Positions 4,778 to 31,400 of a stretch of 64,000 nucleotides of DNA are shown here, in pieces. The DNA is from Tetramitus jugosus. Lineage: Eukaryota; Protista; Heterolobosea. The notes under the pieces are model-generated. The model was not told where the DNA came from and did no database searches. It saw only the letters and a program-made list of their open reading frames with translations. The stretch lies in contig OW569355.1 in NCBI GenBank assembly GCA_937625935.1, positions 62,001 to 126,000 of the forward strand. Reading direction: 5' to 3'. A program made the translations under genes and the position numbers. Every line of letters begins with the position of its first letter. Within the stretch, counting starts at the first letter, position 1.

Positions 4778-5593
4778 ATGGGACAAAGTCAAACATCTGA
4801 ATCGCATCAGCAGCAAAGCTCGTGCCAACCTGATCCATCTGCAACAAGAGAAATCTTGTTTGCAGGAAGCCAACCTACTCTCTTCTCGACAGAAGAAGCC
4901 TCCATCCTGCGATCACATCTCCCTGATCGTCACCAAAAACATGATGTGTGGAATCTGTTGTACAACTCGGCACGCGACGGAGTTTCAGTTCGTACCTTTT
5001 ACAATTCTGTCATGAATCGAGGCCCACAGTTCCTGATTATCAAGGATCAAAAGGGTTATGTATTCGGGGCGTTTGTCAGTGAAGCATGGGACAAGAAGGT
5101 AAATTTTTATGGATCGGATGAATGCTTTGTCTTTCAATTGAAACCCACTCTCCAAGTGTTTAAAGCAGCCTCCAAGATCAATCGTAACTTTATGTACTTT
5201 AATTTTGGGAATCCTTCGCATAGCCCCATCTACAACGGATTAGGCATCGGGGGCCAAGTCAAATTCTTTGCCCTGGAACTTCGGTCAGAGTTTACATCTG
5301 GTGTAAGCAATGCTCACTGTGCTACCTTTCAGTCCCCGTGCTTGGCAAGTGACACAAATTTTGATGTAGTGGAAATTGAAGCTTGGGGATTTCCATTAGA
5401 TGCCAAATCAGAAGAAGCGTTGAGAGATACGTTGCGGATGCAATCACTCATTCAACAAAAGGCCAGAAAGGTTGATCCTAAGGACTTTATTGGAGATATG
5501 ACATTGATGCAGCATGCTGGTATCAATATTGGAGAAAGTGGATATATACAAGAGAAACTTGAGAAGCATTCCCAGCAGGACAGTAGTCAGTAG
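4778..5593 (+). CDS. TLDc-domain protein, MEAK7/TLDC1-like, with N-myristoylation motif
   Basis: MGQSQTS start; WNLLYNSARDG, GYVFGAF, FYGSDECFVF, NGLGIGGQ, CATFQSPCL, EIEAWG. Confidence 0.85.
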   Translation: MGQSQTSESHQQQSSCQPDPSATREILFAGSQPTLFSTEEASILRSHLPDRHQKHDVWNLLYNSARDGVSVRTFYNSVMNRGPQFLIIKDQKGYVFGAFVSEAWDKKVNFYGSDECFVFQLKPTLQVFKAASKINRNFMYFNFGNPSHSPIYNGLGIGGQVKFFALELRSEFTSGVSNAHCATFQSPCLASDTNFDVVEIEAWGFPLDAKSEEALRDTLRMQSLIQQKARKVDPKDFIGDMTLMQHAGINIGESGYIQEKLEKHSQQDSSQ

Positions 5594-5645
5594 AACAATG
5601 ATGGACGTCATTTTAGTAAAAATATGTAAATATCTCGGCACCTGT

Positions 5646-7130
5646 TTATCTGGCAAACTTGTGGAAATGCGGAGCATACATGTTATGGACCATGAGTTGT
5701 CGATACACCTTTGTAAAGTGGTGCGTTCCAACATGGACTGATTGTATTCGGTCGTACTTGCCCAGTAAATCTGAGCATCCAATCGCTGACTCTCCCAAAG
5801 AAATAGCTCGAAAGATGACATTCAACATGGAATCATTTTCGTTCCAGTAGCTGTATGAAGTGTTTTTGAGGTTTCTCCAATTTGTCAGACCCTCTTTGAA
5901 TATCTCATTGTAATCCTTCTCTGCGAACGCCCCAGCGCATAAGTGAACCTCTGAAGGTCTTTGATCATTTGCCAATAACTTAATTGCCTCGACGGCATGC
6001 TTTGCTCCGAGACTATGAGCCACAATTCTCACCTTCTTGTACTTGTCATTCAATTTAACTAGTTCATCTCTAAGTAAGTGAGCATATTGTTGTGCATTGA
6101 CATTTGCTTGCTGAAACTCCAAGTATCCAACAACGACTGTGAGTGCCACATCTTGCAACACTGTTCCCAAGAGCAGTGTAGGATTGAAGAATTTGGTTAT
6201 TGATGTTCCTCTGTACAACATGGTTACAATTTGAAAAGCAGCATATGTTAACGTTGCTACTGGTAGTGGTAGACCGCTGAAAGAAAGCGGAATCTCATCA
6301 GATCCTAACTTTCCCTCATTCTTTAGCTCCTCATGTTTCTTCTTCTGGCCCAGAGATGAGTAATCAAACTGGTGAGGAAAGCGCCCATTTGGCCATTCCC
6401 AACCATATGCTCTATCACCCCACATGTGACTCGACTTTTGAGAGAGTTCGATGTGCGATTGTCGCCAATATCGAAAATACGATCGATCAAACACCCTGTC
6501 ATCGTTCTCTGGTGGTTTTAATCCACGATCTTCATCTGGATCCCTCCTTAGTAGAAACGATGGAACGGATAAACTCGTATTCGTATGACTGGACAAGAAC
6601 CCTCGGACATAAACAGTGCATTCGTCCAGCTTGTCCTTGGCTTGCATACGGTGATGCTGGTCTTGATGCGACAACAATGGAGACTGACCAGGTGTAAGCA
6701 AGTGATCATCATGCAATGTGATCATACGGAATACATGAGGACGTTCTTCCGAGCTCCTGAATGGATCAGCTTGCTTGATTTCTTCATCTTGATCATCGTC
6801 ATCATATCCATTGTGAGGAGGAACTCTTTTCACCGCATTCGGGGTAGGAGTCTTCTGACTCATCATGGATCCAAAAGTCGAAGCCGCAGAAGTAGCTGCA
6901 GCAGATGCACTCGAAGCAACAGAGGAGGCTGCGGCTGATGCAGCTGATGCAGCAGAGGGAACTGTAGTGGAAAGCTGGTTCCAGGCTTCCAAAATCTTTT
7001 CATTCAGAATTTCTTGGATCTGAGATGGAGTTGGAAAGGAGATGTAACTTCGACTCGGTTGATGATAATACCTTGAGCTAAAACCATTCTTGCGGCTGCG
7101 CAGAGCCACATTCAAACAAGATCTATTCAT
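5646..7130 (-). CDS. Alpha/beta-hydrolase-fold protein (DUF726/DUF900-like), possible mitochondrial presequence
   Basis: Nucleophile elbow IVAHSLGA, EVHLCAGAF, NENDSML, C-terminal His; Arg/Ser-rich, acid-free N-terminus. Confidence 0.7.
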   Translation of the reverse strand: MNRSCLNVALRSRKNGFSSRYYHQPSRSYISFPTPSQIQEILNEKILEAWNQLSTTVPSAASAASAAASSVASSASAAATSAASTFGSMMSQKTPTPNAVKRVPPHNGYDDDDQDEEIKQADPFRSSEERPHVFRMITLHDDHLLTPGQSPLLSHQDQHHRMQAKDKLDECTVYVRGFLSSHTNTSLSVPSFLLRRDPDEDRGLKPPENDDRVFDRSYFRYWRQSHIELSQKSSHMWGDRAYGWEWPNGRFPHQFDYSSLGQKKKHEELKNEGKLGSDEIPLSFSGLPLPVATLTYAAFQIVTMLYRGTSITKFFNPTLLLGTVLQDVALTVVVGYLEFQQANVNAQQYAHLLRDELVKLNDKYKKVRIVAHSLGAKHAVEAIKLLANDQRPSEVHLCAGAFAEKDYNEIFKEGLTNWRNLKNTSYSYWNENDSMLNVIFRAISLGESAIGCSDLLGKYDRIQSVHVGTHHFTKVYRQLMVHNMYAPHFHKFAR

Positions 7131-7308: not shown

Positions 7309-9853
7309 ATGATGCAGTTTGGAGAATCCTCTTTTGCAGTCAATAAACCTTCTGCTACCACCAACACCAATACAAACAACCCACTCACCAACAACAACAA
7401 CAACTATACGACAACAGCAGACTCTGCTGAAGACGATCCAATGGACACTGAACCATTTGAAAACTTGTATGAAGAGTCAAAGAGACTTGTCGTAGGCAGT
7501 GATTTTGGTAGCTCTGTTGTTCAACACCGCTTGGATGCACTAGAGAGAGGAATTTCAAGGAATTTGGCCAGTGTTCTCCAACAATCTCAAATGTTGAAGG
7601 AGAAGAATAAGAGAATTGCTGAAGTGGGTCCAAAGAGTGATTACCTGCTGTCTCAGAAGGGATTCAATGTTGAGAGATACAAGAATAGTCTATTGGCCAT
7701 TAAACCATCGACTCATGTCGAACCATCAATGGACATGTTGGATATGGAAACGTACTTGAGACGTCAACAATCATTGGTCATTCTACAGACGATTGAAGAT
7801 GCAAAAAAAGCAACGAGCAATCGTTTCTATGCCAATTATGAACAGTTTGTGAAGAGAGATTGGGAGGAAAATGTGAGAAAACGAGTGGAGAATCAAGTGT
7901 TTATGCCAACGAGAGAAGAACTCATGTTGCCAATGAGTGCCAGTCATATGTTTACGCCAGTCAAGGGAGATGTCATGTCATCGCCTCTCACGACAACTTC
8001 TACGACGTTTGCATCTGGTTACAGTGCAAGTGGAACAACGCCATACACACTCTCCACTCCATCTCTATTGCCAGTGGAAAAGAGGTATGAAACGAGAGGA
8101 AAGATGACTGGTCGCGTGGCACAATACGCTCAAGTGTTGAATCAATGGATGATGACGACCACTACGACATTGAACCAATCATTTGATCTCATTCAACAAT
8201 TCAAACAACAAACAGAAATCATATCGGACGTTCAAGAGAAGTCAGAAGTGATTGAATGTTGGAATTTGTTGCGATATTTGGTCGAGGATCGCAACAGAGG
8301 AGCCATCAAAGCACTAGCCAATCAATACTTGACACTTGTGAAAACAATTGTAAAGAATCATTATGCTACGAGTCGAAAGGAAGCCATTAGAGAGAATAAG
8401 CTGTACATGGTGAGTGACAATATGCGAGAAGTGGAGAGATATGTTGAGATTTTAGTCGAAAATGACAAGTCATACTCTGAGACATCTGAACGATTCCAGA
8501 TTAGCAATGGAAAATTCTTGCCTCTGTGGGCACTTGTTTATTATTGCATCAGATGTGGTTTGCGCGATGATGCATTAGCCATCTTGAAGAGATGTGGACA
8601 TGAAGGCAGACCCGTTTTGACAAGACTCATTTCAGGTCAAGCCGAGCAAATGTATGATTCTTTTGTTGTTCAAGTTATTCTCTTTTTGTGCTTCATAACG
8701 AAAGCTAACACCTTTTTATTTTAGCTCCCATGAAACAATTGACAAGGAAAGCAAACAACTACCAACCGATAAATACTTGAATGCTCTCTATCTGGTACTA
8801 GGCAAGCTCTCTCCAGACAAGAACCATGCTGATATTTTCACAACGACCGAAGACTGGATCTGGTACAAATTGAATGTGAAGAATATTAGTGATCTTCAGA
8901 GTCTGATTTTGAATTTTGGTCCTGATCACTTCTGTCGTGGTACCAATGTGATGAGATACTTTAAACTACTACTGCTAACACAGCAATTCTCAGAGGCAAT
9001 CAAATATTTATTTAATCAAAATGGTGGACAGTTTGCAATTGAAGCTGTTCACTTTGCCATAGCGATCAATTATTACCATCTCGAACAACCTCAGAAGCTT
9101 CAATTTGCTAATATTATCAACGATTATGTACGAATGCTCTCTCAATGTGATGTACGAAGTGCAATCTCCTATTTGCTTCTGTTGAGAGAAGATGAACAAT
9201 TTGAAAAGTATCTCATATCATTTGTATTTGAGATTGATGATGTGGCTCTCTTATTTGGTACGAGTGATGCTTCGAGAGCTGGATTGCTTGCTATTTTACC
9301 GGATCATATTTTGAGATCACTCATCAAGAAGGTTGCTGAAGAATACAAAAACAAGGCACGGTACAAGGAAGCCATCAACCTCTATTATATTGCTTATTTC
9401 AAGGGCGAACACTGTCAAAAGGCTATTGTCGAGAGTGCTACCAAATTCCTCAGAGATAGCCTCCTTCAGGAAGCACCTACGAATGATGCCTTGGCAGCAG
9501 CAAGTATCATTCTTTCATCAAAGGACAGCGAATTCATTGGTGAAACAGATACTCTTCGCTTGCTCATTAACATTGCCAAGTTCTTTGCCCAGCCCTCAAA
9601 GGAAACCCTGAAGCAATACATGTCCGACATCTTACCTCTCAGGGGAGATATTGATAAGTGTATTGAGATTGCCAATGTTCACGAAGATGTGAAACAACTC
9701 TATTCGCGCATTCTATTACTTGCTGGTCAAATCTTAGCAGACGACAGGCAAGCAATCCAAAACCTGTTCAACTTTGCAGGACGCATTAACCAGTACATCT
9801 CGATAGATTGCTCTAGATATCTCTTCCAGTTGAACTCTCAATTAAACCAATAA
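7309..9853 (+). CDS. NUP93: Nucleoporin Nup93/Nic96 (2 exons; intron 8652-8724)
   Basis: LWALVYYCIRCG, TTEDWIWYKL, YFKLLLLTQQFSEAI, EAVHFAIA. The intron GTATGA..GCTAAC..TTAG joins ORFs 7309 and 8777 in frame. Confidence 0.9.
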
Positions 9854-22612: not shown

Positions 22613-22748
22613 GATGATGATGGAAAAAAAACAAGTGGAGAGCTTTTGGTTGAGCTGGTGTGCTGTGTTTTGTTTGATGACGGAGAAAGCTCCTCGTTTT
22701 TTGAAGATCAAGAATTTGAGCGGGATCAATGTTCGGGAAAAAGTTTGG

Positions 22749-22756
22749 GCGCGAAA
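22749..22756 (-). promoter_or_regulatory. E2F-like site upstream of DDB1
   Basis: GCGCGAAA on the plus strand = TTTCGCGC on the minus strand. Confidence 0.4.
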
Positions 22757-22846
22757 TTTCGGTTGTGATCTTTGTGCTTAAGGTTGTTGGTTGGGAATGG
22801 TTTATTGGACGACAAACTCGCTTACTGTATCTGAAAGATAGCTCGC

Positions 22847-23863
22847 TTAAGCCTGTCTGATAACATAGACATTTCCTGCAGGGTCTCTGCAAACGAGGTG
22901 ATTACATCTCAATGGAACTGGGGCTAAGTTTTCTCCTCTTCTCACAACTGGTGCATCGCTCAAAGAAAAGGAAGGTCTTGGTCTTACAATATGGTTGTTT
23001 TTGTCAGACATGGACCATCCAAGTTGTCTATATTTTCCTTGAGTTTGGATGACTCCTCTGTCACTCATTGAGAATGAAGGGCGAGGTCTCTTATCGGACA
23101 GTGAGAATCCAGATGGCTTATGCCTTCCACCCTTAAAACGGTTGCTTATGTCGCTCATGGAGAATGAAGGACGAAGTCTCTTCTTATCAGACATTGAGAA
23201 TCCAGATTGCTTCTTTGCTACAGCTGGCAAAACATCAGAGAGAGACCACCACCAATTTTTGTAGTGTTGAGATTCACTGTCAGACAAGGAGAAGGCAGTT
23301 CTATAGGCATTTGTGTAAGCCTTAGCACCAGTAAACTCGGACAAGGAAAAAGTAGGTCTATAGCCACCAACCAGACCACCCTTTGGCGAATCACTAGCAA
23401 AGGAAGTCTTTGGCTTTCTGTATGCAAGATCAATGCTTTTCTTAACACTTCTCTTGTCAAAACCAAGAGGCAAAATTCTATCACTAGCAAATGAAGTTCT
23501 TGGCTTAATGTACGCAATCTGCTTATAAAGACGCGTTTCATCAGAGTAAAACTTGTCACCACGAGGCATCAGATCACTCCACGTACTTGGCTTATTGAAT
23601 CTCTCAATTCTCTTGTCAAAACCAATTGGCAAAATTCGATCAGTGGAAAAAACTGGTTTGTACAATTGATAGTTGACTGGAGTTTCCTCACTCAATGACC
23701 AACCACCTGCCTTTCTACCGTTATCACTCATTGAAAATGAGCCTCTTGGCTTGAGACCTAGCAGTTTTCTGCTGATAACAATTGGACGATAAGCTGCGAC
23801 AAATGAACAAGCAAACAGTGCGAACACGAGAGCTGCGACAATCAGACGAATATTCATTCTCAT
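22847..23863 (-). CDS. Secreted repetitive polyprotein A (putative multi-core peptide precursor)
   Basis: Signal peptide (LIVAALVFALFACSFVAA); ~18 cassettes ending in [FW]S[ML]S[DE] or related FxSD/GFD; C-terminal CNHLVCRD module. Confidence 0.85.
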   Translation of the reverse strand: MRMNIRLIVAALVFALFACSFVAAYRPIVISRKLLGLKPRGSFSMSDNGRKAGGWSLSEETPVNYQLYKPVFSTDRILPIGFDKRIERFNKPSTWSDLMPRGDKFYSDETRLYKQIAYIKPRTSFASDRILPLGFDKRSVKKSIDLAYRKPKTSFASDSPKGGLVGGYRPTFSLSEFTGAKAYTNAYRTAFSLSDSESQHYKNWWWSLSDVLPAVAKKQSGFSMSDKKRLRPSFSMSDISNRFKGGRHKPSGFSLSDKRPRPSFSMSDRGVIQTQGKYRQLGWSMSDKNNHIVRPRPSFSLSDAPVVRRGENLAPVPLRCNHLVCRDPAGNVYVIRQA

Positions 23864-24128
23864 TGTGTGTTTGTAGTTGTGGTTGGGTATATATGTAAGA
23901 GATAGTATGGATGATGGTGCAGCTTTTTTTTATGTGGTGCAGATGGCCAGTTTGGAAGAAGAGGGGAAACGGAGAGTTCGTATGCGACATGTGACGCTTT
24001 TCCTGGATTGGCAGCATCGCATTGTAAGAATTCCCAGAGATGTTTCTAAATTCCTTTTGTATTTCATTCATTTGACTGTACAACGCTTTGGAGAAAGGGA
24101 GTCAATTGCTCTCGTTGCGCAATTGTCT

Positions 24129-24899
24129 TTATTGGACACGCTTCAAGATGACATACTTTCCTGACAAATCCTTGCAAACAAATTGAGTACACTTGAGAAG
24201 GACTGGAACCTCTTTCCCACTGGTACTTCTCTTGATAACAGTCAAATCGCTAGAGAATGAAGGACGAGTCTTAATCACCAGGTTTGGCTTATTGTCAGAC
24301 ATGGAGAACACTTGATTTTTCTTGATTGTGAGCAAATCGGATGACAACTTCATCTTTCTTCTTGGTCTAACGGAGGCAACCTGAACATCAGAGTAGAATC
24401 CTCGTGGATATAGATCAGAATAGAATCCCCTTGGATATCCTCTTGGATAGAGATCAGAGTAAAATCCCCTTGGATAGAGGTCAGCCATCTCTTGTTGTTC
24501 TTGATAGTAGTACACTGGAGCAATCTTTGAAGAGCGAATACGGTCACTCATGGAGAATGAATTCGAATAAGCTCTTGGCTGAACAACACCATCAGTGGAA
24601 AATGAAGAAGCGTATGCAGTGGATTGGATATCGGCAGGCACATCACTCATGGACCAACCACCATCTCTTCTTCTTCCATGATCACTCATGAAGGAGGATC
24701 TCTTGTATCTTTTGATCTCAGAGTCACTCATTGAGAAGGAATAAGGCTGCTTGAGACCGACTTGAATAATTTTGTAAGCAGTGTTGCTGTCACTGTGACT
24801 GTCACTGGAAAAGTAATTGTAACCATGTCCGTATGCCATGACAGTTCCTGCATAGCAAACGACCAATGCTAGGAGAATGAAAAACTTGCTGGAAGACAT
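24129..24899 (-). CDS. Secreted repetitive polyprotein B, paralog of A
   Basis: Signal peptide (FFILLALVVCYAGTVMA); ~14 cassettes ending in FSMSD/WSMSD/FYSD/FSSD; C-terminal CTQFVCKD module. Confidence 0.85.
   Translation of the reverse strand: MSSSKFFILLALVVCYAGTVMAYGHGYNYFSSDSHSDSNTAYKIIQVGLKQPYSFSMSDSEIKRYKRSSFMSDHGRRRDGGWSMSDVPADIQSTAYASSFSTDGVVQPRAYSNSFSMSDRIRSSKIAPVYYYQEQQEMADLYPRGFYSDLYPRGYPRGFYSDLYPRGFYSDVQVASVRPRRKMKLSSDLLTIKKNQVFSMSDNKPNLVIKTRPSFSSDLTVIKRSTSGKEVPVLLKCTQFVCKDLSGKYVILKRVQ
24390..24482. repeat. Coding tandem repeat (~27-bp unit) encoding LYPRGFYSD x3, one copy with an internal YPRG duplication
   Basis: DLYPRGFYSDLYPRGYPRGFYSDLYPRGFYSD in ORF 24129..24899. Confidence 0.85.
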
Positions 24900-25199
24900 T
24901 CTGTTCTGAAGATGTTTTTGTGAATGATATTTTGTGAATGCGAGCTAAGTGAAGAACCGATTTCAACAAGGGGAATTGGGTTCCCAGAGAAGACATTTGA
25001 CGTTTTCGCTTCGAGCGGGGATATTGCATGCACGTGCAATTCCTTCCCCTTCGTGAGGATTACGGACAGATCAAATGGTTCACAGGTGACAATCTTCTGC
25101 ATCACTTACGATGTCAGCACGCACAGATCTGAGAGCCCGAACCTGTCCGAACAATTTCAGATTTGTTTTTTGCCAAGAGAAAATGGAGTTTATCGGAAA

Positions 25200-28100
25200 T
25201 TACAGACAGAAGACAAATTCCGTGACAGCATGAGCCAGAATGACAAACTCAATGTTCTGCTGCACAAAGAACATGTAGCAGTAGATGAGGGAGGTGAGGC
25301 CGTGGATCACGATGCATCTCACCAATGCAATTGACCACATAAATAAGTTCGTCGGTGGATACATTGTCATTTCCCAAGGACACTTGGTAAGGGCAAACAA
25401 AATGGAGGCCGTAATCATGGCCGTGATGATTACGCCGTTCACTCTTCCATTCATTGTCACGGTAGCGTTCACTGATTCGTCGACTGGCACATCATCTGCT
25501 GGCTTCTTTTGCTCGGCATTTGGCTCGATGTTGAGATAGTTCTTAATCGCTCCTTCAATATCGATGGGAGAAAGAGTCAAAAACTGTCTGCCATACTTCT
25601 TCAGAGTATTGACAACAAAGTGCGAGTTTGAATTATCTTTTTGCTGGATCAAATAGACTCTGACTCTTCTGGCAACTTCAACAAGGAAGAGGAACAAGAA
25701 TAATCGGCCAAGTAATTCATCAGACACAGCACAATATAGACTGTAGAACAATCTCTTCCACAATGCAACGTTGGTGATCAATGTGACATCTGCAACCAAA
25801 TCACTTACAGCTGGTGAAGCCACAGCCAGAGAGGAGTTGTCATTAGAGAAAGGAACGAGACTTGTGGAGGGAATAATCCATCTGAAGAAGAACAACCAAT
25901 CAATAAACTTCATCACTAAACCGAGACATAGTCCCCACAAGCAGCTACTCTTTGCATTTTCGATGAACTGGTTGTCAAAAGAGAACATTGAAATATCTGG
26001 ATTCTGTACAAGGAGGATACTTCTCACAGTCTTCATCAAATAAGTTCCATTCATGTGCATATTCAACTGTCTCGCCAGCTTCAAACCAAATGTCGAAAAT
26101 AGAGTAATCACTCCAAAACAGGCCAACCCGTGCCTGAAAATATATTCGGATGTTTCAAGTTCGTCTTCTAACGTTCTACCAGATGATGATCGCGTTGACA
26201 GTGATGCAAGTACTTGATGTATGAATGGGAATGCTAATATAATACAGAATGTACAAATAAATCCCCAAGCAATGGCTGTCACAGCAGGATGGAAATCCTC
26301 TGATTGTTGCTGTACAACAACAGGCTTAAGTTGAACTGAGACAACTTGTTCCTTTTTTGCTTCTTCTGCTGATAGGAGTTGAGCTTCTTGATGCTTAATG
26401 CGGATTCTCATCTTTTGGACATCGTTTTGCAAGTTTTTGTTCTCTTCATCCAACTTTTGCTTCACATTTTCCATTTCAGATAACTTTTCGCTCAACTTGT
26501 TTTGTTCTTCCTTTGTAGATGACTCGCGTTGCATTGCTTCACGGCATTCTTCTTCCTTTGCATGTAAAGTGCTGTTCAGGCGTGATAATTCTTCATTTAA
26601 TTCATCAATTCTGTTGCTGAGCTTCAAGCGTTCCTCGCTAAGAGTGCTATTGGATGACTCCAAATCAGATACCTTTTGTTGAAGTTCAGTGATATTGTCA
26701 TTCAGTACCTGTATTCTTGATTCATAGGCTGATTTCTGGGATTGAGAATTCTCAGCCTCTCTACTCAACAGTGACTCTACTTGGAGCTTGTATTGCACAA
26801 GTGCTTGTTCTGCTCCCTGTAGTTTCTCCTTCAATTCCTTATTCTCTGAGACGAGTGCTTCCATGCGAGGTGAATTGTCTTCATTCGTGCTTTGCTTTGA
26901 TTTTTTGATTGAATCGAACAGAGAGAATGACCTCTTGGTCTGCAACTTATCGGGCAGAGGAGATATGACTCCAGTGTCACTTGTGAACGAAATGGATGGA
27001 GATCCAGTGTTGCGAGGGGAGATGGACAGCTTTTCTTTCGTCTGCGTAGATCTCATGTCCGGACTACCACTGATCGGAATTGAACCAGAGCCCGAATTGG
27101 CTCTCTCTCTGGACGCCAACATGTCCAATGAAACACTTCTTGTCATTGCATTATCCAACAACGACTGAGGCTCACGCAAACTCTTCGCACTACTGCTACT
27201 GGTGCTTCGCGATCTCATCTCCGAGTCATCTTCCTCCAAATCAGAATGAGTGTCGTCTTCCTCCGTTAAAATATTATCTACAGAAACAACAGTGTCAGAA
27301 TCAACAGTCTCCTCATCCATATCCGTAAACTTTGGTTCGATATTCATCTTCAACAACAGTAGACCACCTGTTGTTGGCGATGACAAATCCAGTGTGTTCT
27401 CACTGTCATCATTCGCCGAAGTTGTCATTTTCCCACTGCTGTTACTTCGACTAAACAACGGTGTCTTACTAAATAGACTCAATCGCTTCTTCTCTGTTGG
27501 TATCGGTGGCGGTACAACCTTTGCAAACGACTTGTTCGTCAATGTCATCATTGGCAACGTTGCCGTACACTGCTCGCCCAGTTTTTGTTGACGCTGTTTC
27601 ATTTGTGTGAAGCAATCGGACAAATCATACACGTGACTACAAATTTTCTTGTTGAGCAAGTTGGTAGCGAGTTGTGAGTCAATAAACTTGAATTGGTCGT
27701 CCACAAACTCCTCAATCGTAATTTTTAGCTGCTTCTGTTTCCATGATTGCTCAATAAGAGTGTTTGGATTACTGGATAGCTTGTCAGATGACAATGGTTC
27801 CATTGTGGCAACAAAGCTAAACATTGGTGTTGACACTCGATCAAAATCATATTCATTGGTAGTCGGATTGAACGTTGCTGTTGCAATTTTTCCTCCTCTA
27901 AAAAAAATAGCATCATTATCATCAATCACAGTATGATGATTGAATCATGCACAATCAACAGAGATCAAACAAGAGAGAGAAAATGTATGTGTAAGAAAAT
28001 GGGCACGCAAAACAAACAAGCAACAATAACAAGAATAATGGTTAAAATATGACAAACTTTTTGTGACCTCTCTTCCAAGAAATGACAATTTTCTTCTGTA

Positions 28101-28835: not shown

Positions 28836-31400
28836 ATGTTTTCGATCGGTCAACCCTTTTCTCACGAACTTACAAAATTTGAAAAGACGAGACAGGATCA
28901 TAATTTGAACCCTAATACTTGTCCCTATTGGGGTCCTTCTTACCGTAAACCTTATCCAACCAACACATGGTGGATCAACCTTGTTCTCGATGGAAATAAC
29001 CCCATTCAGACCTATCCCTATCTCATCAAGGCACATGAAGGATTCAAGGTTTGCTATCCCAGTAGAGTCGCCAATCCAGACTTTATTCTCGAACCATTTG
29101 TTGACAATTTGACTCTGACAGCCAAAGAGCCCATGGGAACTCGTTCTGTCATGTGCCATGATGACCTCTCCGTCACTGTTCAATACTCGAATCCGTATGA
29201 TCAGGGTGCCACCCTGCAGAGTCCCATTTTTCGAGGACAAGTCTACCACACAGTAGAGTACAATAGCATGACTCCGTTGATTCGATCGATTCATGCCATT
29301 CTCAAAGTCAATGGACGCTATTTGAACGAGTACTATCAAGGAGGTGGTGCAGCCAACACCCCTACATTGTCAACCAACAAACTCAAACTAGAATTGAACA
29401 ATGGACAAACATGGATCGTGTACAGCTCTAGTACTATTGCATGGAACATTGGAATGTCTCACTTGGAGGCCTACTGTCCCTTCCAAGGTGTCATTCGAGT
29501 GGCACATGTGCTTCAACCGAATTTCGAACCTGCATTGGACCAATTTCAAGGCACTTATCCGGTGTCTGCTTTAGTGGACATGTTTGTAGCTCATACGGAA
29601 GATTCAGGTGACGTGGGCACTGTTGTTTTTCGATTCTCCAAGAGAGGCAACGGACCCATCATTCTGTTCACTCTACCTCATCATCGAGACATCCTAAGAG
29701 AACCCATATATACGAGACCACGGTTGCGCTATCGTAGCATCAAGGGATGGTGTGAAGCAGTGATTGGAGATGAGTGGCTCATGGATGATACACTCGTACA
29801 GGATATTGGCTTTTACTCCCGTTATTCCATCCCCATGGAACGCATTCCCACCTTGGTTGACTCACTGAGAGCTGACTCGGATTTTATGCCCACAGCGAAT
29901 GATCCCTACTTTTATGGAAAATCCATTGCCAAGTTGGGTCGGTTAGCTGTGATTGCCGACGAGTTAGCACAACCAGATTTAGCACGAAAGATACGTGAGA
30001 ATATGAAGCAGTCCATTGACAAGTGGCTCGACGGCATCATCTATAATGCTGTTGAACAAGATAATAAGCTTGTTTATGAGAGGAGTTATGGAGCTCTGGT
30101 GAGCAAGAAGAGTGTTGGAAATCCACATGCTGACTTTGGTCAATACTATATGAACGATCACCATTTTCACTATGGCTACTTTGTGTATGCAGCTGCATGC
30201 ATTATCAAGGAGGACATTGACTGGGGAAAATTGTATCGTAGCAAGATACTAGAGATTGTGCGTGACTATGCCAATCCGAGCAAGAACGATCCAGAGTATC
30301 CCTACCTGAGATGCAAGGATTGGTATACGGGACACTCGTTTGCAGCAGGATTATTCCCATTTGCAGATAGTAGAAACCAAGAATCTACTTCTGAAGCTGT
30401 AAATGCATACTACGCAGTGTACTTGCTAGGAATGTCTCTGAACGATGAGAACATGACAGATGTGGGTCGATTATTGATGCAAACAGAGATTCGATCCGCA
30501 CAAAAGTATTGGCAAATTAAGGATGAGAACAATGACATTTACGAACGAGAATTCTCAAAGAATCGCGTCGTTGGTGTACTGTGGGAAACAAAGGTCGATT
30601 ATGCAACGTTCTTTGGTAAGAATGTAGAGTACATTCACGGAATTCAGATGCTTCCCTTCACACCTATCACAGAAGATTTGTTAGACCCTGATTGGATCAA
30701 AGGTGCCTGTCAAGTGTATGGAGAAGCTTTCCGAAGAAGTCAACCCAAGCTCGAAGAAGGATGGAAGGGATTCTTGTTGATGGCTAATTCGATAATTGAC
30801 AAGGAAGGAGCCACGAATTTTATTCAAAAGTTGACTGGTTTCGATGACGGAAACTCAAGAACCAATACCTTGTATTTTCTGTACACTCGGCCTGGTCGAG
30901 ACAATCACAAGAGAGCGTCAATTTACTCTGGTGTTGAGAGACGAGTCATGGAAGAGGAAGAGGTGCGATCGAATCGTAGTATGCTCGTACCTTATGACCG
31001 AAGATCCTACAACACTGCGCCATTGTCTCCAGAGTATCAACGACCTCCACCGCAACCTATCGTACCATACAGGAGTCCTACTTCGCCCATGTACCGCCAA
31101 CAACCTCCTTACAATTATCCATATCAACACTCGCAATACCTCAGTCCTACTTCCCCATCACCGTATGGACCACCTCCTCCTGCTCAGCATCCATATCCTT
31201 ATCACGCTGGTTATCCTGCCAGACAAGCTTTGACACCACCTCCTCCGCAACCATCAAGTCAAGCTCTTTCACCTCCTTTGCCTGCTCCAATGTCTCCTGG
31301 TCCGATTGCAGTATATCCTGGAGTTATTGTTTATAAACGTGAACGGATGTCCACGAGAGCAAGAAAGATGCTGAAAAGGGCCAAGAAAGAATTCTTTTGA
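28836..31400 (+). CDS. GH81 endo-1,3-beta-glucanase, no signal peptide, Pro/Tyr-rich tail
   Basis: PTNTWW, DPYFYGK, MNDHHFHYGYF, WYTGHSFAAG, RNQESTSEAVNAYY, IHGIQMLPFTP. Confidence 0.92.
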   Translation: MFSIGQPFSHELTKFEKTRQDHNLNPNTCPYWGPSYRKPYPTNTWWINLVLDGNNPIQTYPYLIKAHEGFKVCYPSRVANPDFILEPFVDNLTLTAKEPMGTRSVMCHDDLSVTVQYSNPYDQGATLQSPIFRGQVYHTVEYNSMTPLIRSIHAILKVNGRYLNEYYQGGGAANTPTLSTNKLKLELNNGQTWIVYSSSTIAWNIGMSHLEAYCPFQGVIRVAHVLQPNFEPALDQFQGTYPVSALVDMFVAHTEDSGDVGTVVFRFSKRGNGPIILFTLPHHRDILREPIYTRPRLRYRSIKGWCEAVIGDEWLMDDTLVQDIGFYSRYSIPMERIPTLVDSLRADSDFMPTANDPYFYGKSIAKLGRLAVIADELAQPDLARKIRENMKQSIDKWLDGIIYNAVEQDNKLVYERSYGALVSKKSVGNPHADFGQYYMNDHHFHYGYFVYAAACIIKEDIDWGKLYRSKILEIVRDYANPSKNDPEYPYLRCKDWYTGHSFAAGLFPFADSRNQESTSEAVNAYYAVYLLGMSLNDENMTDVGRLLMQTEIRSAQKYWQIKDENNDIYEREFSKNRVVGVLWETKVDYATFFGKNVEYIHGIQMLPFTPITEDLLDPDWIKGACQVYGEAFRRSQPKLEEGWKGFLLMANSIIDKEGATNFIQKLTGFDDGNSRTNTLYFLYTRPGRDNHKRASIYSGVERRVMEEEEVRSNRSMLVPYDRRSYNTAPLSPEYQRPPPQPIVPYRSPTSPMYRQQPPYNYPYQHSQYLSPTSPSPYGPPPPAQHPYPYHAGYPARQALTPPPPQPSSQALSPPLPAPMSPGPIAVYPGVIVYKRERMSTRARKMLKRAKKEFF

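Follow-up and report, generated by a model that had tools for sequence, protein, structure and literature searches.

The locus at positions 22847–24899 of the window, i.e., of the whole stretch of 64,000 nucleotides of Tetramitus jugosus DNA analyzed here, raises the question of which products are made from two neighboring genes, A and B, that encode putatively secreted proteins built from short and variable cassettes with a recurring end. The initial annotation, made from the DNA letters, had placed two tandem cassette polyproteins here; both open reading frames lie at these positions and all cassettes that it had quoted as examples are present. It had also read the proteins as multi-peptide precursors, which is the best reading of the data and is strengthened by the finding of the same junction in an unrelated gene family, as described below.

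Structure, transcription and conservation of genes A and B

Gene A (22847–23863, minus strand) encodes an intronless open reading frame of 338 amino acids and gene B (24129–24899, minus strand) one of 256 amino acids, equally without intron. They are separated by a spacer of 265 nt comprising the promoter region of A (23864–24128). Both proteins start with a hydrophobic stretch, which reaches a KD11 hydropathy value of 3.2 in A and 3.0 in B, while the rest of both proteins never exceeds 1.5. This fits signal peptides, as had been claimed before, which are predicted to span residues 1–24 in A (23792–23863, minus strand; putative cut after VAA; helix with a pLDDT of 74–80) and residues 1–22 in B (24834–24899, minus strand; putative cut after VMA). 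They are followed in A by 16 cassettes of 11–30 amino acids that end in hydrophobic-(x)-[ST]-[DE] (22955–23791, minus strand) and in B by 13 cassettes of 9–26 amino acids (24246–24833, minus strand), as delimited by motif and unit analysis; across both proteins the unit lengths are irregular. Applying one uniform junction rule and counting the tail, A has 17 units (16 junctions) and B has 14 (13 junctions), by which the earlier estimate of about 14 units for B is borne out and the one of about 18 for A is lowered. The only recent tandem expansion at the DNA level consists of the LYPRGFYSD units of B (24387–24476, minus strand).

Both proteins close with a C-terminal tail containing a C-x4-C element, which in A has 35 amino acids and a net charge of +3 (22847–22954, minus strand) and in B 38 amino acids and a net charge of +6 (24129–24245, minus strand), the latter being predicted as a small beta-sheet with a mean pLDDT of 70. 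Fold searches with the tail model returned no structural match (best Z 2.5). The AF2 model of A consists of the signal helix, an unmodelled middle part with a mean pLDDT of 35 and a beta-rich tail. The expectation of a library of cationic peptides holds for A, in which 10 of 17 units carry a net charge of +2 or more, and fails for B, in which this applies to 4 of 14. The hydrophobic moments of the cores are mostly low, and B is mostly neutral. Dibasic KR/RR sites (five in A, seven in B) are scattered in the cassettes or the tail and do not lie at the junctions.

A and B are real genes and are separately transcribed. In contigs from three metatranscriptomes they are covered as separate RNA blocks, in which splice joints are absent; RNA depth is zero at 22646–22786 and, within the spacer, at 23915–24055, and there is next to none at 24902–25042, while a DNA run fills all 30 bins. 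As this RNA coverage derives from assembled contigs, its depth gives no ranking of expression. For B, an orthologue was found in a JGI contig (P0001), which is 93% identical and has the same upstream neighbor; the 11 synonymous versus seven non-synonymous changes between the two indicate purifying selection on B. The coding indels listed among strains have lengths of 3, 6, 9, 12, and 18 nt, all multiples of three. Some strain variants affect the junctions themselves (S201Y and L185P or L185S in B, F234L in A). The single nucleotide variants of A and B together (17 non-synonymous, 14 synonymous) and of a neighboring gene (two and seven) are few and pre-selected and do not carry a claim of positive selection.

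The surrounding assembly of 26.35 Mb in 56 contigs has a GC content of about 42% and intron-poor housekeeping genes. The Pfam-scanned open reading frames place the tandem pair between DDB1 and a coiled-coil membrane protein, and the assigned neighbors encode housekeeping functions (DDB1, kinesin, MCM6, GH81, EPL1, and Nic96). Among the 12 neighboring open reading frames scanned, all of them housekeeping or without assignment, no cluster of modifying or tailoring enzymes was found. Directly upstream of B, and in the same place in the P0001 contig, lies a transcribed open reading frame of 909 amino acids (25200–27929, minus strand), which combines a coiled coil with a multi-pass membrane region at its C-terminus; the latter weakly matches a CAAX protease (Rce1-like, E = 0.53). 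Moreover, the GH81 endo-1,3-beta-glucanase (28836–31400, plus strand) has a Pro/Tyr-rich C-terminal extension, and two consecutive open reading frames at 7309–9853 (plus strand) split one Nup93/Nic96 match, probably representing one gene with an intron.

Neither A nor B has a meaningful match in Pfam, NCBIfam or PDB sequences, in agreement with the initial annotation, which had not recognized the family. Homologues of A were absent from 2,192 candidates, and beyond P0001 no relative of A or B was found in 1.84 billion representatives, 5.8 billion proteins and JGI metagenome contigs, in searches limited by word and length that leave room for distant kin, e.g., in Naegleria. Viral contigs likewise contained no relative, and searches of the own genome gave no third paralogue; the candidate L005 was rejected as an unrelated GTPase-like open reading frame.

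The junction between cassettes and its use in a second family

The ends of the cassettes had been described as near-invariant [FW]S[ML]SD. This holds for most of A, in which 11 of 16 junctions follow the strict form [FW]-S-[ML]-S-[DE], and for few of the junctions of B (4 of 13), the remaining ones in both proteins being of the F-x-S-D type or degenerate. As read from the aligned cassettes, the common core of the junction is hydrophobic-[S/A]-D, and A and B conserve two positions beyond it. The acidic residue is Asp in 27 of the 29 junctions and Glu in two. All conserved positions are located N-terminal to this Asp and none follows it in the position profile. Asp is preceded by Ser in 13 of 19 cases in A and 12 of 17 in B, compared to 10.5% in background open reading frames comprising 34,163 amino acids (binomial P = 3e-9 and 7e-9). 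The junction motif occurs 14 times in A and 11 times in B, whereas 20,000 shuffles gave means of about one and a maximum of six. The Ser residues of the junctions are encoded by AGY and TCN codons at ratios of 8:7 in A and 6:5 in B, and the DNA of the two genes shares only scraps of similarity. The mixed Ser codons and the near absence of DNA similarity mean that the motif is kept at the protein level and does not stem from recent duplication. The earlier claim of selection on the motif is thereby upheld: judging from its excess over shuffles and background and from its codons, the junction is maintained by selection on the protein.

Screening the genome by pattern and homology, as had been recommended, produced no further paralogue of A and B, but a DNA pattern search met genes with the same type of junction on contigs C42 and C43. 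The gene on C42 (L048:4166–5191; G000:C42) encodes a signal peptide and Pro/Arg-rich cassettes closed by [FYL]-S-D, and a tandem pair on C43 (L049:3665–4339 and 5108–5908; G000:C43) has the same layout. Downstream of the cassettes, these proteins contain an acidic spacer and a C-terminal domain of Gly/Asn/Trp repeats ending in Phe, a layout that presumably recalls the Pro-rich plus Gly-rich antimicrobial precursors of insects. The family has no Pfam match and was not picked up by searches with A or B. The sole homologue found, P0002 from another sample in Logan, is 34% identical to the query; its cores are changed and its hydrophobic-[S/A]-D junctions are retained. Both in the C42 protein and in P0002 the last junction directly precedes the acidic spacer and the distinct Gly-rich domain. 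Hydrophobic residues are present at positions −4 and −2 of the junctions in this family as well. Regarding the DNA patterns, a triple F-[AS]-D pattern gave no matches, and with looser ones true matches were swamped by chance ones.

A further regularity of the junction concerns the position after the Asp. In six proteins, Pro follows the Asp in none of 50 junctions, while the repeat regions contain 6–20% Pro (naive P = 0.0025, the junctions being non-independent). Its recurrence in unrelated families, its position at a domain boundary and the exclusion of Pro at +1 are together most simply explained if the junction is a protease site. These observations point to a cleavage site common to several families rather than a family-specific motif, by which the recognized element is probably shorter than the [FWY]-S-x-S-D of the initial annotation. 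In the literature, no description of the A/B family or of a hydrophobic-[S/A]-D junction was found. A and B probably represent a lineage-restricted pair of multi-peptide precursors with an apparently undescribed Asp-based junction code that is shared across families.

A motif search brought up the hexamer AGGGGA in the spacer upstream of A (23962–23967) and twice upstream of B (24969–24974, plus strand, and 25045–25050, minus strand, both within 24969–25050 and both kept in the P0001 contig). It also occurs upstream of both C43 genes (L049:3549 and 4983). In all these cases it lies 75–150 nt upstream of the gene, and in three of them AATT follows. It was chosen post hoc and has 30 matches in 212 kb of DNA; a promoter element common to A, B and the C43 genes is possible.

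Proposed processing and competing explanations

A and B are probably precursors that are cut by an Asp-directed protease of the secretory or vacuolar route into linear peptides. For the steps downstream of translation we infer the following course. The signal peptide would direct A and B into the secretory route, where an Asp-directed endoprotease of a late secretory or digestive-vacuole compartment would cut at every hydrophobic-[S/A]-D junction, yielding about 16 linear peptides from A and 13 from B with lengths of 9–30 amino acids, plus one disulfide-bonded, beta-rich tail peptide. Linear products are expected since no modifying enzymes are clustered with the genes and the flanks of the junctions depart from the rules of AEP ligases and cyanobactins. 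The junction would serve as a genome-wide convertase code, as KR does for Kex2, which is also used by unrelated precursor families. A cut after the Asp is slightly favored by the lack of Pro at +1, and would be hardly more probable than one before it. Trimming of X-Ser dipeptides after the few SD-SE junctions was considered and dropped, as it is compatible with both cut sides. As a lead for the model, the language-model neighbors of A are neuropeptide precursors (0.85–0.87). Several observations count against it: some junctions vary between strains, the KR/RR sites within the cores could be cut by a kexin, the saposin polyproteins of the amoeba are without this junction, the cores would make poor classical antimicrobial peptides, and the language-model search with B gave no neuropeptide signal.

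By analogy to plants, the enzyme is most likely to be found among the 11 subtilases (S8) located in the genome. In plants, phytaspases acting on prosystemin and PSK cleave C-terminal to an Asp that is preceded by hydrophobic residues, and SBT3.8, acting on CLEL6, PSK1 and PROSCOOP20, cleaves before Asp; both release peptide hormones (PMC6043521, PMC13082318). The Asp at the scissile bond and the hydrophobic residues upstream are shared with A and B, whereas the plant precursors mostly yield one peptide and A and B would yield many; an Asp-specific subtilase in T. jugosus is putative. Other candidates were discarded. Astacin/BMP1-like enzymes cut before Asp, and the genome has no match to PF01400; for PF13688 metalloproteases, a single sub-threshold match of 26 residues was unconvincing. 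Legumain, of which two copies are encoded, prefers Asn, and the cores contain 12 Asn in A and six in B.

The same general layout is known from the fungal KEX2-processed repeat proteins (KEPs) such as the precursors of alpha-factor, Rep1 and ustiloxin, which share with A and B the signal peptide, internal repeats, many short cores and a recurring junction that is reused by unrelated families (PMC6339444). In KEPs, KR, RR or KK sites separate the repeats, whereas the junction in A and B is hydrophobic-[S/A]-D, the cores are far more diverse, the lineage is Discoba and sequence similarity is absent. As the defining dibasic sites are not found at the junctions, assignment of A and B to the KEPs was rejected.

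Alternatively, A and B might stay uncleaved and form a secreted structural or adhesive polymer of a cyst wall, surface coat or extrusome, which we regard as an appreciable minor possibility. F-S-M-S would then act as beta-strand stickers or as sites of Ser phosphorylation or glycosylation, separated by charged disordered spacers, and the Cys-containing tail would anchor or cross-link the chains. The alternation of hydrophobic residues and Ser would suit a beta-strand, Tetramitus makes cysts (PMC11106597) and the degeneration of some junctions among strains is consistent with such a role. The irregular spacing of 9–30 amino acids argues against it, as does the AF2 prediction, which is without a solenoid, a weak argument given a pLDDT of 35 and an alignment of three sequences. 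Further arguments against a polymer are that the Asp hardly varies, that Pro never comes after it and that an unrelated family has the same junction at a domain boundary.

A sub-case of cleavage, which we consider rather unlikely, assigns the additional conserved residues of A and B to a receptor and not to the protease. In that case, [FW]-S-[ML]-S(-D) at the end of the cassettes would be the bioactive message of pheromone- or neuropeptide-like signals read by one receptor, in the manner of tachykinins or FMRFamides, e.g., in encystment, the switch to the flagellate or density sensing. A and B do conserve two positions more than the minimal junction, and their cores are many, short, non-amphipathic and low in charge. 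In the animal tachykinin, allatostatin and FMRFamide precursors, many repeated peptides with variable N-terminal portions likewise share a conserved aromatic motif at the C-terminus, and these precursors are the language-model neighbors of A, with scores of 0.83–0.87 that lie below the reliability line of 0.9 and with low recognition; the search with B gave no neuropeptide signal and scores below 0.9. Processing at acidic residues is known for cnidarian and placozoan precursors (PMC9545775). In contrast, animal precursors carry dibasic and amidation signals after each peptide, which the junctions of A and B lack, G[KR][KR] occurring once per protein and within cores, and no homology to them is seen. 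As the C42/C43 family is also hydrophobic at −4 and −2, the longer motif may just be the protease site.

Finally, cyclisation or modification of the cores, as had originally been suggested, through a RiPP-like route with a legumain/AEP ligase or a PatG-like subtilase as the enzyme, is highly improbable: the Asp at P1 resembles the Asn/Asp of cyclotide and PawS precursors, F-x-S-D presumably has a superficial likeness to cyanobactin follower sequences and two legumain-type C13 proteases are encoded whose catalytic His-Gly and Cys motifs are intact (set L062, L063/L065, L064), but the neighbors of A and B are housekeeping genes instead of PatA/PatG and tailoring enzymes, a single junction with nothing conserved after the Asp replaces the leader and the separate N- and C-terminal recognition sequences of each cyanobactin core, the hydrophobic P2′ and Gly-type core start of AEP substrates are rare (L/I/V at +2 in 6 of 29 junctions, Gly at +1 in 1 of 29) and the Asn residues within the cores (12 in A, six in B) would be the first cuts of legumain, which prefers Asn. 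Identification of A and B as cyanobactin-type or cyclotide-type precursors was rejected on these grounds. The same C13 set also includes one GPI8-like member, and the match to the copy on contig C12 is broken into two parts, probably by an intron.

Possible functions and meaning

Provided that A and B are processed by an Asp-directed protease, an action of the peptides on ingested or neighboring bacteria is a plausible function, held with less than even confidence; a role as cell–cell signal and a role as structural or surface peptides are both tentative, and each is somewhat less likely. An action on bacteria is suggested by the bacterivorous lifestyle of the amoeba, the cationic cores of A, the disulfide tail and the precedent of the naegleriapores, whose A and B precursors in Naegleria are heterolobosean pre-pro-multipeptides with a proposed role in killing phagocytosed bacteria (PMC6723116). 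The cores would be poor classical antimicrobial peptides, since they are weakly amphipathic and those of B mostly neutral, and signaling would be an equally good fit for a large set of short peptides that share one aromatic end.

The units of the naegleriapores are saposin-like domains with six cysteines, of which Pfam and saposin searches found none in A and B. The saposin polyproteins of the own genome are without the hydrophobic-[S/A]-D junction, and a link to the naegleriapores via a common junction was rejected. These prosaposin/naegleriapore-like polyproteins, with several saposin domains each, are located at about 638.7–640.7 kb of G000:C4 (L055) and about 21.0–21.7 kb of G000:C48 (L052). 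Three further saposin-domain open reading frames (L051, L057, and L058) are acyloxyacyl hydrolase-like by layout.

In its most far-reaching form, which we think doubtful, a non-dibasic proprotein-convertase code would serve several unrelated and possibly co-regulated families, and A and B would release neuropeptide-like signals whose conserved aromatic-Ser-Met/Leu-Ser end is read by a receptor, which would mean that hormone-style signaling arose independently in Discoba. Reusable cleavage codes in multi-peptide precursors have been described for animals, fungi and plants. If the reading of A and B as Asp-cut precursors is true, a separate Asp code in a heterolobosean amoeba would mean that such a code was invented independently in a lineage that diverged deeply from these groups. 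The junction rule could then be used to mine protist genomes for peptide libraries, possibly including new antimicrobial or signaling peptides, that are missed by KR-based pipelines.
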